Origin: Octopus bimaculoides
Lineage: Eukaryota
DNA length: 51,635 nucleotides
Direction of reading: 5' to 3'
Assembly (NCBI RefSeq): GCF_001194135.2
Contig: NC_068981.1
Coordinates: 9,508,210-9,559,844 of the forward strand
The notes under the pieces were generated by a model. The model was given only the letters and a program-made list of their open reading frames with translations, was not told the origin of the DNA and did no database searches. Below, piece after piece: positions 1,865 to 49,372 of the stretch; positions within the stretch are counted from its first letter, which is position 1; every line of letters begins with the position of its first letter. A program made the translations under genes and the position numbers.

Positions 1865-1990
1865 GTTCAAATTTACAGAAAAAAGAGACGAGGACAGGTG
1901 AAGGAACAAAAGGCAGGTCTATTAGTTTAACGCTCAGGAAGAATGGAAGTCTTTGACGTTTCGAGGCTACGCTCTTCGACAGAAAGGATT
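1865..1990 (-). mobile_element. PLE-like terminal repeat with a minimal hammerhead-like motif
   Basis: Minus strand reads CCTTT-CTGTCGA-A-GAGC-GTAG-CCTC-GAAAC-GTC-AAAG. A homologous copy lies at 48911-49030. Confidence 0.5.
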
Positions 1991-2112
1991 AAGAGAGGGA
2001 AAAAAAAGGAGAGTGAACAGATAAAAAAAAAAGAAAAAAAGAAAAACGGAGAGAACAAAAAAACGGAGAGAGAAAATATGAGTAGAGATTAACGGGTCAA
2101 CATGATGAAATA

Positions 2113-2196
2113 TATGTATATATGTATGTATGTATGTATGTATGTATGTATGTATGTATGTATGTATATATGTATGTATGTATGTATGTATGTATG
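2113..2196. repeat. (TATG)n microsatellite
   Basis: Seen directly. Confidence 0.97.
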
Positions 2197-3101
2197 TTGC
2201 TGTTTCTGGTCAAGTATTCCGATATATTCTTGGCTTTTCAGCAGTTTGGGTCATTGACATTTGTAGGTAAGAATTCATTCTGACACCAAATGATAAATGA
2301 TTGATTCAGTGAAGTTAAAAGTTTTGTGTTTTCAAATGTCCAATACGTCTCTTTCACAGTGTAATTGTTATGTGTAATACATACATACATACACACACAT
2401 ATATATATATATATATATATATATANNNNNNNNNNNNNNNNNNNNNNNNNNNNNNNNNNNNNNNNNNNNNNNNNNNNNNNNNNNNNNNNNNNNNNNNNNN
2501 NNNNNNNNNNNNNNNNNNNNNNNNNNNNNNNNNNNNNNNNNNNNNNNNNNNNNNNNNNNNNNNNNNNNNNNNNNNNNNNNNNNNNNNNNNNNNNNNNNNN
2601 NNNNNNNNNNNNNNNNNNNNNNNNNNNNNNNNNNNNNNNNNNNNNNNNNNNNNNNNNNNNNNNNNNNNNNNNNNNNNNNNNNNNNNNNNNNNNNNNNNNN
2701 NNNNNNNNNNNNNNNNNNNNNNNNNNNNNNNNNNNNNNNNNNNNNNNNNNNNNNNNNNNNNNNNNNNNNNNNNNNNNNNNNNNNNNNNNNNNNNNNNNNN
2801 NNNNNNNNNNNNNNNNNNNNNNNNNNNNNNNNNNNNNNNNNNNNNNNNNNNNNNNNNNNNNNNNNNNNNNNNNNNNNNNNNNNNNNNNNNNNNNNNNNNN
2901 NNNNNNNNNNNNNNNNNNNNNNNNNNNNNNNNNNNNNNNNNNNNNNNNNNNNNNNNNNNNNNNNNNNNNNNNNNNNNNNNNNNNNNNNNNNNNNNNNNNN
3001 NNNNNNNNNNNNNNNNNNNNNNNNNNNNNNNNNNNNNNNNNNNNNNNNNNNNNNNNNNNNNNNNNNNNNNNNNNNNNNNNNNNNNNNNNNNNNNNNNNNN
3101 N

Positions 3102-3477
3102 NGTTTTGATGGCACATCTGGTGTATAAGAGAATTTGACATCGCTGCCCTAAACTGTGTCTCATTTCGAGCCATTGGTTCGTCTGGTATTGTGGAGAGGA
3201 AAGCGTCGAGTTTTGTCTTGAAGACCTCCACATCCGTGTCTTGCAGGTCTCTCAAATGTTTTGGCAGGGCATTGAAGAGCTGAGGTCCTCTGAAACCGAG
3301 GCTGCTGCAGTATCTCGTTCTTATGTGAGATGCAGTGGACGGTACCTTTGGCACCATGCAGTGGCGACCCATGCGGGCATTCCTGTAGTACTTGATGCCA
3401 AAGTTCGGCACCAGTCCTTCCAGTATTTTCCATATGTATATTATTACATATCTCTCCCGCCTGCGTTCCAGGGAGTA
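3102..3477 (-). mobile_element. 5'-truncated CR1/L2-type LINE, ORF2 C-terminus
   Basis: Open frame YSLERRRERYVIIYIWKILEGLVPNFGI...GPQLFNALPKHLRDL..FKTKLDAFLSTIPDEP is the typical post-RT tail of CR1-group LINEs. The 3' end runs into a gap. Confidence 0.85.
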
Positions 3478-3789
3478 TATATATATATACATGCATATAT
3501 ACATACATACATACGTATGGATGTATGTATTTATATGTTTGCATGGATTGTATTGATATATGTATATGTTGTTGTTGTTTTTGATAGAGTATTCTGACAA
3601 ATTCTTGATGTCTCACCAATCTGGATTATTGATAGTTTGTATCGAAAATTCTCCAAAGTTTCAAAATATGCTTACACAGAAAATTGAAAGGTGCTCAGAA
3701 TCATCAAGAAACCACTAAATATTTTCCCTAATTTAGTTTTTATTATAGTGAAAATCTTTTGGTTTATTACCAACCTTATTATTTTCATG

Positions 3790-4115
3790 CTGAATATGCG
3801 CCATGGAAAGATAGTGTTAGGAAGAACATTTCGGGAACATATCCGAAATGAAATAATTCGAGAGGGGAGTGGGAGGAAACGACGTAATTTTAGAATACTG
3901 AAAACACATGTTACTCTGGGCCGGCCATGTCACAAGGTTCACAGACATGAGGTGGACATGTACAATTGTCGAGTGATATTCAAGAGATCGGGAAATGACA
4001 CTTGGAAGACCTCTACGATCACGGGAAGACAACTTGGTTAAACGATGTGGCTCATGATGGAAACTAAAAGCGCAATCATGAAAGAATTGGAAGCGCATTG
4101 TGATCAGCGGAGTAT
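3790..4115 (+). mobile_element. Decayed RTE-clade LINE 3' fragment
   Basis: LLWAGHVTRFTDMRWTCTIVE*YSRDREMTLGRPLRSREDNL matches the RTE C-terminal WAGHV.R...RW...W.P...R..GRP..RW.D pattern, with in-frame stops. Confidence 0.8.
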
Positions 4116-4129
4116 TACAACATCCGATA

Positions 4130-46960: not shown

Positions 46961-47279
46961 CGAGAAGAAAGAAATATGCTTCTTGTGCACGGCCGTTTAA
47001 AACTACTTTTCGGTGGCAATGCGTTTAAGAAACTCCAGGCTGAAGTTAATGTTCGTTTATCAGTTATATCGAAGATGTATCGTTTGAATAAAAATTGATA
47101 TAAGAAAATATCATACATGTATATTTATTGTAAAATATTAAGTATTTATGATGAAATACTTACATATGAGGGGGGGGGGGTAGACGTGTAAGACTATACA
47201 GCTTCTCAAAACAGAGGAAGAAGAGATGAAGCTAATAAGATGAAGAAAGACATACTTAAAATCAGAGAGGAACGGAGTT

Positions 47280-48270
47280 ACAGGTAAGGTGTTAGGTGAG
47301 TAATGTTAATTTAGGTGTAAGAGAGAAAATGAAACATGCGTAGAAAGATGGCTGTTGAAAGGTATAAGATGGTGAAATAATTAAACGTACGTTATGGTTC
47401 TTTAGGAGAAGGGCAAGTATTTCTTTCAAAAAACGGGATTTTCCTGATAGATGAATATATTTGTTAAAAATCGGAAGCAAACATATTGGAGCAGAAGGAA
47501 TTGCTATGAATGGAAGTAAAGTGTGAAATAAAAAGGAAGCATAAATAAATAAATAAAATGATAGATGTGGTTAAGGGGGGGGGGGTGAAACGAGGCAAGG
47601 ATGATGAGAAACGAAGCTGAAGGTGATGAGGACATGTTGAAACCAAATATATTCAAATGGACAATGGATAATATAAAATGTAAATTGAGAAATGCTAAAT
47701 ACATTCATAAATGCATTTATTCTAGTTTGTCTTATTAATGACCATTAATATGGCGTGAAATTAACAAATAGAAGTCTGCCAGGTTGAATTTCCTCCACAA
47801 TGAATCTAATATGTAAAATCCTACAAGTTCACAGACCTCAGCTTCATCGCATGAGCCCGGAGCGATATCAAATAGCAAGTCGTCATTACGCTTTACCCAA
47901 AGGTTGTTTCCAAAGAATGGTAAATACTTTCTGGCGTGCATGATAATCGCATTGTCAAGGTCGCAAACAGAGATGAAATTCTTGTATGAAGTCGAAGATG
48001 CTTTGAGATAGAGGAGAAGAACTCATCAATATTAAATTGGATCAATTTATAATTACGCATACTGTCTATTTGGTTAAGCCAATTAATAACAGCGGAAATG
48101 TTCTTCTACAAAGGCAAAATTGTGGCTTGATGAACTTAAGCGATAATTCTATCTAAGATAAGCGTGCATTCTATTGTTTGTTAGGCCTGATAAAACTGCA
48201 TTTAGGGTCAGCTAAAATGTTATCTCTGAGGTCCTTAAACGAAATGTAGAGATCCCTAACTGCTAAGCAT
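47280..48270 (-). mobile_element. Decayed Penelope-like element reverse transcriptase
   Basis: YISFKDLRDN..PKCSFIRP, KNISAVINWL..LIQFNIDEFFSSIS, IIMHARK..FDIAPGSCDEAEVCELVGFYILD, then PIFNK..FLKEI..KNH. These match PLE RT blocks FITLKDHK, FDIVEFYPSI and FDVTMGSYDGAEVCELVG. Confidence 0.82.
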
Positions 48271-48339
48271 TCAGTTCAATTATTTATATTAAACTTAAAG
48301 TCTAAAGCCTGAATCTCCTTAATTAATATTACGGTATAT

Positions 48340-48410
48340 CGTAGTAGTAGTAGTAGTAGTAGTAGTAGTAGTAGTAGTAGTAGTAGGAGGAGGAGGAGGA
48401 GGAGGAGGAG
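48340..48410. repeat. (GTA)n(GGA)n microsatellite
   Basis: Seen directly. Confidence 0.96.
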
Positions 48411-48910
48411 GGAAGGTGTAGTAGTAACAGTAGTAGTACATCTTGAATTTGTTGGATGTCACGCTGCCCAACTTGTTTCTCTCTCTTGTTTTTCTCCCTT
48501 CTTTCCTTCCTTTTCTGATACACTTCCTTCCTTTTCTTGTTTTCTTCCTCTCCTTTTGCCTTCCCGTCTTAAGTCTTTCTTTCTTTCTTTCGTTTTCACT
48601 TTATCTTTTTTTCTTCTTCTTTAATACTATCTTTAGTAAGTCTCTTTGCTTTCGTTTCGCCCACTTCAACCTCGCCCACTTTTCCTGTTAAACATTTGGT
48701 ACTTATAAAAAAATTTCCTATCTTTCCTTACATAATCTTAATTCATTTATACTTACTTCAATCACCTCAAAACACTCCGCCTTACAATAAGCGCCTTTCA
48801 CAATTTTCATATGCTTTCATCTTTTACTTGTTTTACTCATTAAACTGCGGCCATGCTGGGACTCCGCCGTCAAGAATTTTAGTCGAGCGAACCGACATAT
48901 ATACATATAT

Positions 48911-49030
48911 ATGAAGAGCGTAGGCTCGAAACGTTAAAGCCTTTTTCAATTCCCAAGCGTTATACTAATGCATCTGTTTGTTTTCTACACTACCTGTCTT
49001 CGTCTTTTGTTTTCTTGTGAATTCTCCCTA
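48911..49030 (+). mobile_element. PLE-like terminal repeat fragment with HHR 3' half
   Basis: GAA-GAGC-GTAG-GCTC-GAAAC-GTT-AAAG; homologous to 1865-1990; TA tracts on both sides. Confidence 0.55.
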
Positions 49031-49160
49031 TATATATATATAATGGATAAATCATACAAAATGTATAAATGGATGATAAGTAAAGCATCGGTACAATTTC
49101 GGTTACCCGTTGTTATCCGTAGATTTATAGCAGGAACTTCGTGGTGGCGCTTGGGGTAAC

Positions 49161-49372
49161 AATATTAATAAAATAGATGGAATGTGTAATAGACTTTATT
49201 GGGTAACAACTCATGTTTCGACGACCCGTTCTGGGTCTCTTCAGGTACATCAATAAAATGCCTCACTAGAGATTTCTTGAGTCGGCTTACATACCGCTAT
49301 ATGTTCGAGAATGAGTTAAAACAGAAAAATTAATAAAGGCTAGTACACATTCCATCTCCTATTTTATTAATA
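49161..49372 (-). mobile_element. Foldback element with ~40-bp arms and a degenerate HHR
   Basis: 49161-49200 is the reverse complement of 49332-49372. Minus strand CTGAAGA-GACCC-AGAAC-GGGTC-gtc-GAAAC-ATGA-GTT at 49244-49208, followed by AATAAA. Confidence 0.65.

Follow-up and report, generated by a model that had tools for sequence, protein, structure and literature searches.

The stretch of DNA analysed here comprises 51.6 kb of the Octopus bimaculoides genome (contig NC_068981.1, positions 9,508,210 to 9,559,844) and is referred to as the window throughout. A preliminary description of its sequence pointed to five short foldback elements (el1 to el5), each pairing a hammerhead ribozyme (HHR) core with an inverted repeat, and regarded them as tiny units of the kind that would be annotated as miniature inverted-repeat transposable elements (MITEs). 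The question that this locus raises is whether the inverted repeats are the functional ends of such units or a trace of the way in which the elements were integrated. Our analysis favours the latter: the elements are probably old, neutrally decaying insertions made by the retrotransposition machinery of Penelope-like elements (PLEs), and the foldback would be an optional by-product of integration rather than a functional transposon end. The surrounding sequence is rich in AT, in microsatellites and in short interspersed nuclear elements (SINEs), and it is interrupted by 18 assembly gaps that sum to 5,566 N.

Self-blastn and a repeat search of the window recovered all five inverted repeats within a few bases of where they had been placed (Table 1), and no credible open reading frame (ORF) was found in any of the elements, as previously claimed. 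The arms had also been described as mostly unrelated to each other. This applies to most of them, except that el2 and el3 are homologous, diverged relatives with a common 3' region, here called the X tail. The HHR is located in the 3' region of the units, 45-240 nt from the 3' end, and in el1A, el2, el4 and el5 (four of four) the inverted arm copies the 3'-terminal region of the strand that carries the HHR. In el3, the HHR-like motif sits in the right arm of the inverted repeat itself. Long hairpin folds are predicted for whole-element transcripts, the z value being -14.8 in el3 and -7.2 in el5.

Inverted arms are not, however, a constant feature of these elements. Beyond the earlier list, three further HHR-bearing copies were found at 1870-1986 (el6A), 5283-5612 (el1B) and 48913-49026 (el6B), all of which are arm-free. 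The 48913-49023 segment of el6B matches el6A in inverted orientation at 75.7% (self-blastn), and the HHR of el6A runs from 1986 to 1951, which is therefore where the span given in the preliminary description begins. The arm is likewise absent from two of three X tails, namely those at 4985-5087 and 11262-11345. With el1B, el6A, el6B and two X tails devoid of an inverted arm, an obligatory foldback architecture is not supported. The 5' end shared by el1A and el1B favours a defined element of approx. 320 nt.

An HHR core had been assigned to each of the five elements. In type I hammerheads, the conserved core comprises C3-U4-G5-A6-N7-G8-A9 and G12-A13-A14 together with A15.1-U16.1 and H17, and as read it is complete in el3 only. 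Judged from the motifs, hammerhead-derived sequence appears to be really present in el1, el4, el5 and the newly added el6, albeit damaged or partly unread, but the hammerhead identity of the motif in el2 and el3 is doubtful. The clearest case is el6A, which reads as a textbook minimal HHR, CUGUCGA-a-GAGCGUAGCCUC-GAAACGUC, apart from A6U. In el5, a 3-nt GUC insertion adjoins the core between helix II and G12. The only match to the full descriptor is provided by el3, the core of which is buried in its own 82-bp repeat stem in the predicted fold. A perfectly palindromic helix III segment is present in four motifs, i.e., ACGU in el6A and el6B, ACAGCUGU in el3 and ACUCGAGU in el4; AUGCAUGCAU lies within the helix III segment of el1B, and helix III of el2 and el5 is not palindromic. 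The 10.1/11.1 pair is G-C in el1B, el5, el6A and el6B, A-U in el3 and el4, and an A.G mismatch in el2. An unpaired nucleotide between A9 and 10.1 is found in el6A and el6B only. Between el2 and el3, 16 of 17 HHR core positions are conserved according to a by-eye count on the alignment, compared with a background identity of approx. two thirds, and one helix II pair covaries from C-G to A-U.

Whether such motifs exceed chance depends on which part of them is counted. The bare CTGANGA string occurs 23 times in the window versus 18.2 +/- 3.8 expected and is thus at chance frequency. A published-style descriptor of minimal HHRs that permitted one core mismatch at most was run on the window and on 300 shuffles, and the resulting P values are indicative only, because the tolerances of the descriptor were set after the candidates had been seen. 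Loci with a compact helix II numbered 3 versus 0.52 +/- 0.74 in the shuffles (P = 0.027), and those with a helix II of up to 70 nt numbered 4 versus 1.65 (P = 0.07). When the whole 15.1-16.1 segment was required to be palindromic, 2 compact loci were observed versus 0.073 expected, and 3 loci with a helix II of up to 70 nt versus 0.157 expected; neither number was reached in any of the 300 shuffles. An excess over expectation is seen for loci with a palindromic helix III and for compact loci, but not for the bare CUGANGA string.

Covariance models were less responsive. Rfam returned no hammerhead match for the whole window at the gathering threshold, and at E <= 10 the whole window yielded only microsatellite-driven false matches to miRNA families. 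In focused searches, RF00163 matched el5 at 49250-49213 on the minus strand with a score of 16 bits (E = 0.23), where the gathering threshold is 34, the sole hammerhead match of these searches; el1, el3, el4 and el6 gave none. Minimal PLE HHRs are known to escape the standard models, and the failure of Rfam therefore lowers the HHR claim without excluding it. Thermodynamic folding of the isolated HHR regions was uninformative (z between +0.9 and -1.2), and a search of metagenome contigs for helix II of el4 followed by GAAAC returned only three unrelated prokaryotic coding sequences.

The sites at which the elements are inserted provide a further line of evidence. Five of seven insertions are located within 10 nt of a microsatellite, versus 12.4% of positions at random, and the microsatellite-like targets are (TA)n or (TG)n, with el4, el5 and el6B residing in (TA)n. 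The insertion of el4 can be followed in particular detail. It lies in the internal (TA)n of a copy of the R2 tRNA-SINE family, and paralogous SINEs show a clean empty site. The R2 family, characterized by the B box GGTTCCGGGTTCAGTCCC and an internal (TA)n(TG)n, hosts both el4 and the el5/el6B cluster, and two of its copies form an inverted pair around a 10-N gap at 8734-8743. Between the inverted repeat of el4 and the right boundary of the insertion lie 60 nt, which form a one-sided tail at 21448-21508. In el5, the repeat ends 117 nt short of one boundary, and the one-sided extension on the 3' side covers 49162->49046, with (TA)n bounding both sides of the insertion. Truncation at the 5' end is variable, and el6B is cut within the ribozyme core. 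Target duplications are unreadable within microsatellites, and only el1A shows a possible one of 5-7 bp. The latter element appears, from the flanking sequence, to sit inside an el2-like copy, with GTAAT.. and GTATT.. as the candidate duplication. Reading 4565-5612 as a single complex insertion, in which an inverted copy is followed by a pseudo-long terminal repeat (pLTR) and then by the unit, was considered and is disfavoured, since excising 4565-4968 restores the el2-like sequence. The segments 4884-4968 and 5283-5612 would constitute a pLTR tandem only on condition that the 314 nt between them had been inserted later, and the comparison of the flanks argues against this.

Coding sequence of the PLE type is also present in the window. 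A decayed fragment on the minus strand (48260->47738), which contains stop codons and one frameshift and is truncated at both ends, matches long proteins with E = 1e-19 in tblastn. These homologues were retrieved by an exhaustive HMMER search only, as a word-indexed protein search with the fragment gave no matches. They show a weak match to RVT_1 as well as, at the C terminus, a GIY-YIG-like domain (21.2 bits, E = 3.6e-4, slightly below the Pfam cut-off), and they bear DKT, MRWR (RWK-like) and CxCx5C linker motifs. The combination of DKT, RWK-like, CxCx5C and GIY-YIG motifs is a hallmark of the Hydra clade (PMC8557442), which comprises short PLEs that have a C-terminal endonuclease and bear hammerheads; their targets are (TA)n, and they are found in aquatic invertebrates, molluscs among them (PMC8557442). 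By these motifs, the reverse transcriptase (RT) fragment can be called Hydra-like. The presence of el4, el5 and el6B in (TA)n agrees with this clade as well, although the RT fragment is decayed and unlinked, and Hydra PLEs are said to bear canonical HHRs, which differ from the mostly minimal ones found here.

Many of these features have precedents in the literature on PLEs. Their minimal HHRs have a type I topology with a helix III of 0-2 bp whose 15.1-16.1 segment is palindromic, a base left unpaired after A9 and a conserved G10.1-C11.1 pair (PMC4209133). The palindrome of helix III, given as positions 15.2-16.2 and loop 3, was not imposed by the search of those authors and is typical of PLE hammerheads (PMC4209133). 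In vitro, the activity of these HHRs is weak and depends on dimers (PMC4209133). Cervera & de la Pena 2014 described thousands of dispersed single minimal HHRs that are "probably related to truncated PLEs" as well as pairs of HHRs on opposite strands, 100-700 bp apart (PMC4209133); a claim of novelty for the architecture seen here is thus not supported. For PLEs in general, Craig et al. 2021 reported strong 5' truncation and an inverted, 5'-truncated copy adjacent upstream that results in inverted repeats, a tail confined to one end, hammerheads located in the pLTR close to the 3' end, and microsatellite targets with consequent assembly problems (PMC8557442). The elements in the window resemble such truncated insertions in their minimal type I HHRs with palindromic helix III, in the opposite-strand pairs, the inverted 5'-truncated copy upstream, the one-sided tail, the microsatellite targets and the assembly breaks. 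They differ in that a linked ORF for RT and endonuclease and a pLTR tandem are absent, that the tails exceed 30-40 bp, and that two motifs have A-U at 10.1/11.1. The link to PLEs that had been suggested earlier is consequently strengthened by the minimal-HHR features, by the inverted copies of the 3' end upstream and by the decayed Hydra-clade RT fragment in the same window.

A mechanism by which foldbacks could arise is offered by the biochemistry of the PLE protein. Frangieh et al. 2024 found that it nicks and extends both DNA strands in vitro (PMC11167929), and that reverse transcription begins at two internal sites, which explains the PLE tail (PMC11167929). Nicking of both strands combined with two internal starts of reverse transcription is therefore a plausible origin of head-to-head copies and of the tail. 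Each unit would represent either the heavily 5'-truncated 3' end of a PLE or an ORF-less element of approx. 200-330 nt that borrows the PLE RT-endonuclease in trans, and it would be inserted by target-primed reverse transcription at microsatellite-like targets. Since both DNA strands are nicked and extended, that 3' end would often be reverse-transcribed once more into a shorter cDNA, placed head-to-head upstream; this second-strand cDNA would correspond to the inverted arm, and one end may bear an extra tail. The hammerheads would have been inherited from the source element, in which they might once have processed multimeric transcripts as dimers, and would by now be mostly inactivated by point mutations or indels. 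What the sequence shows directly is the anatomy of the elements, the enrichment of minimal HHRs with a palindromic helix III, the microsatellite insertion of el4 with its paralogous empty sites, the optional arms, the variable truncation and the PLE coding debris; from this we infer mobilization in trans (or in cis with truncation), double priming and past ribozyme activity.

Several observations weigh against this explanation. The RT fragment lies apart from all the elements, none of these could be assigned to an autonomous PLE by its 3' end in a comparison that included no eukaryotic genome or repeat library, and the partial-tandem pLTR is missing, as the direct-repeat list of the window contains no direct tandem of any unit. 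The tails of 60 nt in el4 and 117 nt in el5 exceed the published 30-40 bp, and el1A has exact repeat termini together with a short possible target duplication, both of which a MITE would show. No HHR is verifiably intact or demonstrably catalytic: el1, el2 and el5 have core or helix defects, the CUG of el4 falls in a gap, and the intact core of el3 is combined with a helix II of 57 nt. The A-U pair at 10.1/11.1 of el3 and el4 contrasts with the high conservation of G10.1-C11.1 in PLE HHRs, and what is read as a motif in el2 and el3 may by chance be no more than the B-box region of a SINE in inverted orientation, as the GGAATTGAAACAGCTGTAAGG of the el3 motif resembles the reverse complement of that region. 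Finally, the Rfam models stay below threshold, and the enrichment of total loci is modest (P = 0.03-0.07) and was obtained with tolerances chosen after the fact. Strict membership in the PLEs is therefore not granted to elements that have no ORF for RT and GIY-YIG and show no pLTR tandem; they are most probably PLE-derived debris.

If the elements were MITEs or foldback DNA transposons, the terminal inverted repeats would be the functional ends and the hammerhead-like strings would be chance matches. The repeats at the termini of all five elements, their AT-rich ends, the precise termini and possible duplication of el1A, the chance frequency of CUGANGA and the silence of Rfam are compatible with this, but one repeat is missing in the sibling el1B and in the two X tails. 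Moreover, the repeats of el4 and el5 fall short of the insertion boundary on one side, arm lengths vary from 41 to 230 nt and the arm always copies the end downstream of the HHR, and el6 has the same combination of HHR and 3' end with zero repeat. Chance matches are also difficult to reconcile with palindromic-helix-III HHRs that are enriched over all 300 shuffles. With repeats missing in siblings or short of the boundary, MITE-like units are decidedly unlikely. Dispersed monomers of metazoan non-LTR retrozymes, which would spread via self-cleaved and circularized RNA and for which the ribozyme would be essential, are slightly likelier and yet still improbable. Like retrozymes (PMC7229834; Li et al. 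2026), the elements are small, AT-rich and devoid of ORFs, and they bear a type I HHR; their size of approx. 200-330 nt and their low GC content fit retrozyme monomers (PMC7229834), and el1A and el1B have a defined common 5' end. Retrozymes are, however, defined by tandem repeats and circular RNAs, and the direct-repeat list shows no tandem arrangement of any HHR unit in the window. In addition, the HHRs are of the minimal PLE kind and not canonical (6-bp helix I, 4-bp helix II, loop-loop contacts), their cores are mutated, and a circular template alone leaves the inverted arms unexplained. Retrozymes may themselves be derived from PLEs as non-autonomous elements (PMC7229834; Li et al. 2026 preprint); in the preprint, the origin of animal retrozymes is placed in PLE pLTRs, and the proportions of monomers are described as variable.

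Least credible is the view that part of the pattern is an artefact or made up of unrelated repeats, with the el4 palindrome as an assembly error and the HHR of el2 and el3 as a SINE-derived inverted B box. The assembly does call for caution. Five other gaps are bordered by direct duplications of 99.7-100% identity (self-blastn), which probably represent contig ends present twice or overlaps that were left unresolved, so that the assembly is unreliable next to gaps and the sequence flanking them is to be distrusted. PLE-type structures are also known to break short-read assemblies (PMC8557442). The gap at 21147-21174 is the sole listed one within an element, el4, and the remaining listed gaps fall between elements. 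The arms of el4 are inverted and differ at 2 positions and by a 6-nt indel, and hence they are not a simple reuse of reads; the clean paralogous empty sites of this insertion argue in the same direction. As for the motif, the reverse complement of its 3' half in el3 can be aligned with the SINE head ...CTTTACGTTCAGAGTTCAAATTCC, and the strict descriptor yields 0.05 chance matches per window, which adds up over many windows. The conservation of 16 of 17 core positions between el2 and el3 and the covarying pair in helix II speak against a spurious origin.

Two conclusions about the state of the elements follow from their divergence. Decay has apparently been neutral, because arm identities are 81-93% in four elements, siblings are 76% identical and the core defects are scattered. 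With arms of 99% identity, el4 is the youngest, and nothing in the sequences suggests present-day activity. The large population of self-cleaving and double-stranded transcripts that had been envisaged is not supported, since all fully read copies except el3 are disabled, and the el3 core is locked in a stem.

The gap in el4 deserves a separate comment. The left arm reaches the gap edge at the equivalent of right-arm position 21208, which is 3 nt 3' of the predicted cleavage site. Because the left arm ends at the gap, C3-U4-G5 and the 5' strand of helix I are unread, and the continuity of the arm across the gap is putative. The gap thus permits an arm end at the cleavage site without demonstrating it. 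If the unread bases were GGC followed by CUG, the 230-bp stem of the foldback would be helix I of the ribozyme, and the inverted copy would be a full-length cDNA of an RNA with a self-cleaved 5' end; we give this pair of proposals, taken jointly, only a slim chance. If they were true, el4 would be the genomic footprint of PLE hammerhead activity in vivo, for which no RNA-seq read ends at the PLE HHR site have been found (PMC11167929). Should arm ends pile up at cleavage sites genome-wide, HHR function in PLEs would become testable from sequence. A general coincidence of arm ends with cleavage sites was considered and rejected, as the arm of el5 is 7 nt off, that of el2 is 20 nt off and that of el1A is far off.

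Several associations between the elements and SINEs were noted. In the el3 region (10949-11135 and 11185-11300), a tRNA-like SINE head is fused at the B box to the foldback in place of the usual SINE body, and the right arm contains an inverted copy of approx. 25 nt of the adjacent head. Schistosoma Sm-alpha is a short non-coding SINE-like retroposon that combines an RNA polymerase III-type head with a canonical active hammerhead; these SINE-like elements of Schistosoma were reportedly described by Ferbeyre et al. in 1998 (cited in PMC4209133). The similarity of el3 to Sm-alpha is that a tRNA-like SINE head immediately precedes it on its own strand; unlike the canonical active HHR, the el3 motif includes a helix II of 57 nt and is possibly spurious. 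The 3' end of X and el3 (..ATAATAAATAAATATAACC) resembles the SINE tail (..ATAATAATATAACC), a likeness that hints at a common 3' recognition sequence. An X tail, a 22-nt spacer and a 5'-truncated SINE form a composite that occurs twice, at 5003-5283 and 10662-10944, with 94% identity and 5.4 kb apart; in both copies the SINE is cut at the same 5' position, and identity falls sharply upstream. This duplication could have arisen from transduction or read-through retroposition, or from gene conversion.

Other repeats were noted as well. A considerable part of the window consists of copies, in either orientation and frequently tandem or nested, of an abundant tRNA-derived SINE with the head GGCGAGCTGGCAGAAACGTTAGCACGCC...GAGTTCAAATTCC. 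A third repeat family of approx. 390 nt is represented by four copies of 84-92% identity in both orientations and contains GGGAATCGAAAC, a reverse-complement B box that mimics the hammerhead GAAAC box. Other coding debris includes C-terminal fragments that we assign by eye to RTs from two families of non-LTR retrotransposons; for the one at 3103-3612, relatives of 76% identity exist among ENA metagenome contigs. In addition, there is a transposase-related DUF4817 helix-turn-helix (Pfam E = 8e-8), as well as an acidic ORF, rich in Ser/Glu/Lys, which is perhaps an exon of the host.

Table 1. Elements, hammerhead motifs and other features of the window (arrows give the direction of minus-strand readings).
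Feature	Position	Strand	Description
el1A	4565-4968	(-)	unit 4872->4565; upstream 12-nt spacer and inverted copy 4968->4884 of the unit's last 89 nt
el1 inverted repeat	4560-4646 / 4884-4972		81% over 89 nt
el1A HHR remnant	4785->4750	(-)	CUGAAGA GUAAGUAACCACUCC AAAA UGCAUACGU C; helix II 5' strand mutated, G12A
el1B	5283-5612	(+)	76% identity to el1A; same unit start as el1A; no inverted arm
el1B HHR	5365-5411	(+)	ggug CUGGGGA GGAGAUAACCACUCC GAA AUGCAUGCAUCAU A cacu; sole core defect A6G
el2	10428-10746	(+)	inverted X tail 10428-10499, central HHR-like region, X tail 10674-10746; left end adjoins (TG)n
el2 inverted repeat	10428-10499 / 10674-10746		93% over 73 nt
el2 HHR-like motif	10564-10657	(+)	ucu UUGAUGA AAUUA..UAAUG GAA ACGGCUGU A agg; C3U; A.G mismatch at 10.1/11.1
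el3	11048-11375	(+)	82-nt inverted repeat right after SINE head 10949-11058; X tail to ~11375
el3 inverted repeat	11048-11129 / 11189-11270		93% over 82 nt
el3 HHR-like motif	11198-11280	(+)	CCU CUGAAGA AAUUC...GAAUU GAA ACAGCUGU A AGG; core intact; helix II 57 nt
el4	20913-21508	(+)	inverted arm 20913-21146; gap 21147-21174; HHR remainder 21175-21207; direct arm 21208-21447
el4 inverted repeat	20913-21142 / 21218-21447		99% over 230 nt
el4 HHR remainder	21175-21207	(+)	(nnn)ACGA AGGGAAAUAGCCCU GAA ACUCGAGU C GCC; CUG and helix I 5' strand in gap
el5	49046-49372	(-)	inverted arm 49372->49332; HHR 49250->49205; direct arm 49200->49163
el5 inverted repeat	49163-49200 / 49332-49372		88% over 41 nt
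el5 HHR	49250->49205	(-)	guac CUGAAGA GACCCAGAACGGGUC guc GAA ACAUGAGU U guuac
el6A	1870-1986	(-)	HHR-bearing 3' fragment, no inverted arm; 3' end adjoins (CA/TG)n, microsatellite 6 nt off
el6A HHR	1986->1951	(-)	cuuu CUGUCGA a GAGCGUAGCCUC GAA ACGU C aaag; sole core defect A6U
el6B	48913-49026	(+)	sibling of el6A; 5'-truncated within HHR core at imperfect (TA)n; 3' end at (TA)n
el6B HHR remainder	within 48913-49026	(+)	(TA)n-GA a GAGCGUAGGCUC GAA ACGU U aaag
Solo X tail	4985-5087	(+)	3' region common to el2/el3; no inverted partner nearby
Penelope-like RT ORF fragment, decayed	47738-48260	(-)	~aa 205-360 of ~700; stops, one frameshift, truncated both ends
R2 tRNA-SINE copies	8201-8860; 11496-11893; 13488-13609; 20730-20918 + 21505-21761; 29926-30358; 38437-38668; 48805-48895 + 49398-49684
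Abundant tRNA-SINE, among others	7768-8180; 10769-10944; 16843-17206; 19954-20189; 23664-24175; 26154-26991; 35021-35270; 37469-37784; 39474-39628
Third repeat family	18929-19320; 22353-22740; 25697-26073; 31855-32246
Other coding debris	3103-3612; 27009-27326; 33448-33774; 44391-44861; 45615-45992	(-); (+); (+); (-); (-)
Gap-bordering direct duplications	337-403/770-836; 1204-1285/1317-1398; 8670-8733/8744-8807; 42993-43321/43627-43955; 44775-44892/44971-45088

Elements of this kind are already known, and it is the individual families that are probably unrecorded. The window thus adds several minimal-hammerhead families and leaves the knowledge of hammerheads and PLEs unchanged. What appears to be a ribozyme-bearing MITE family is better read as the debris of PLE insertions, and this diagnosis is useful for the annotation of a microsatellite- and SINE-rich genome, in which annotators would mislabel such elements as MITEs or leave them unclassified.

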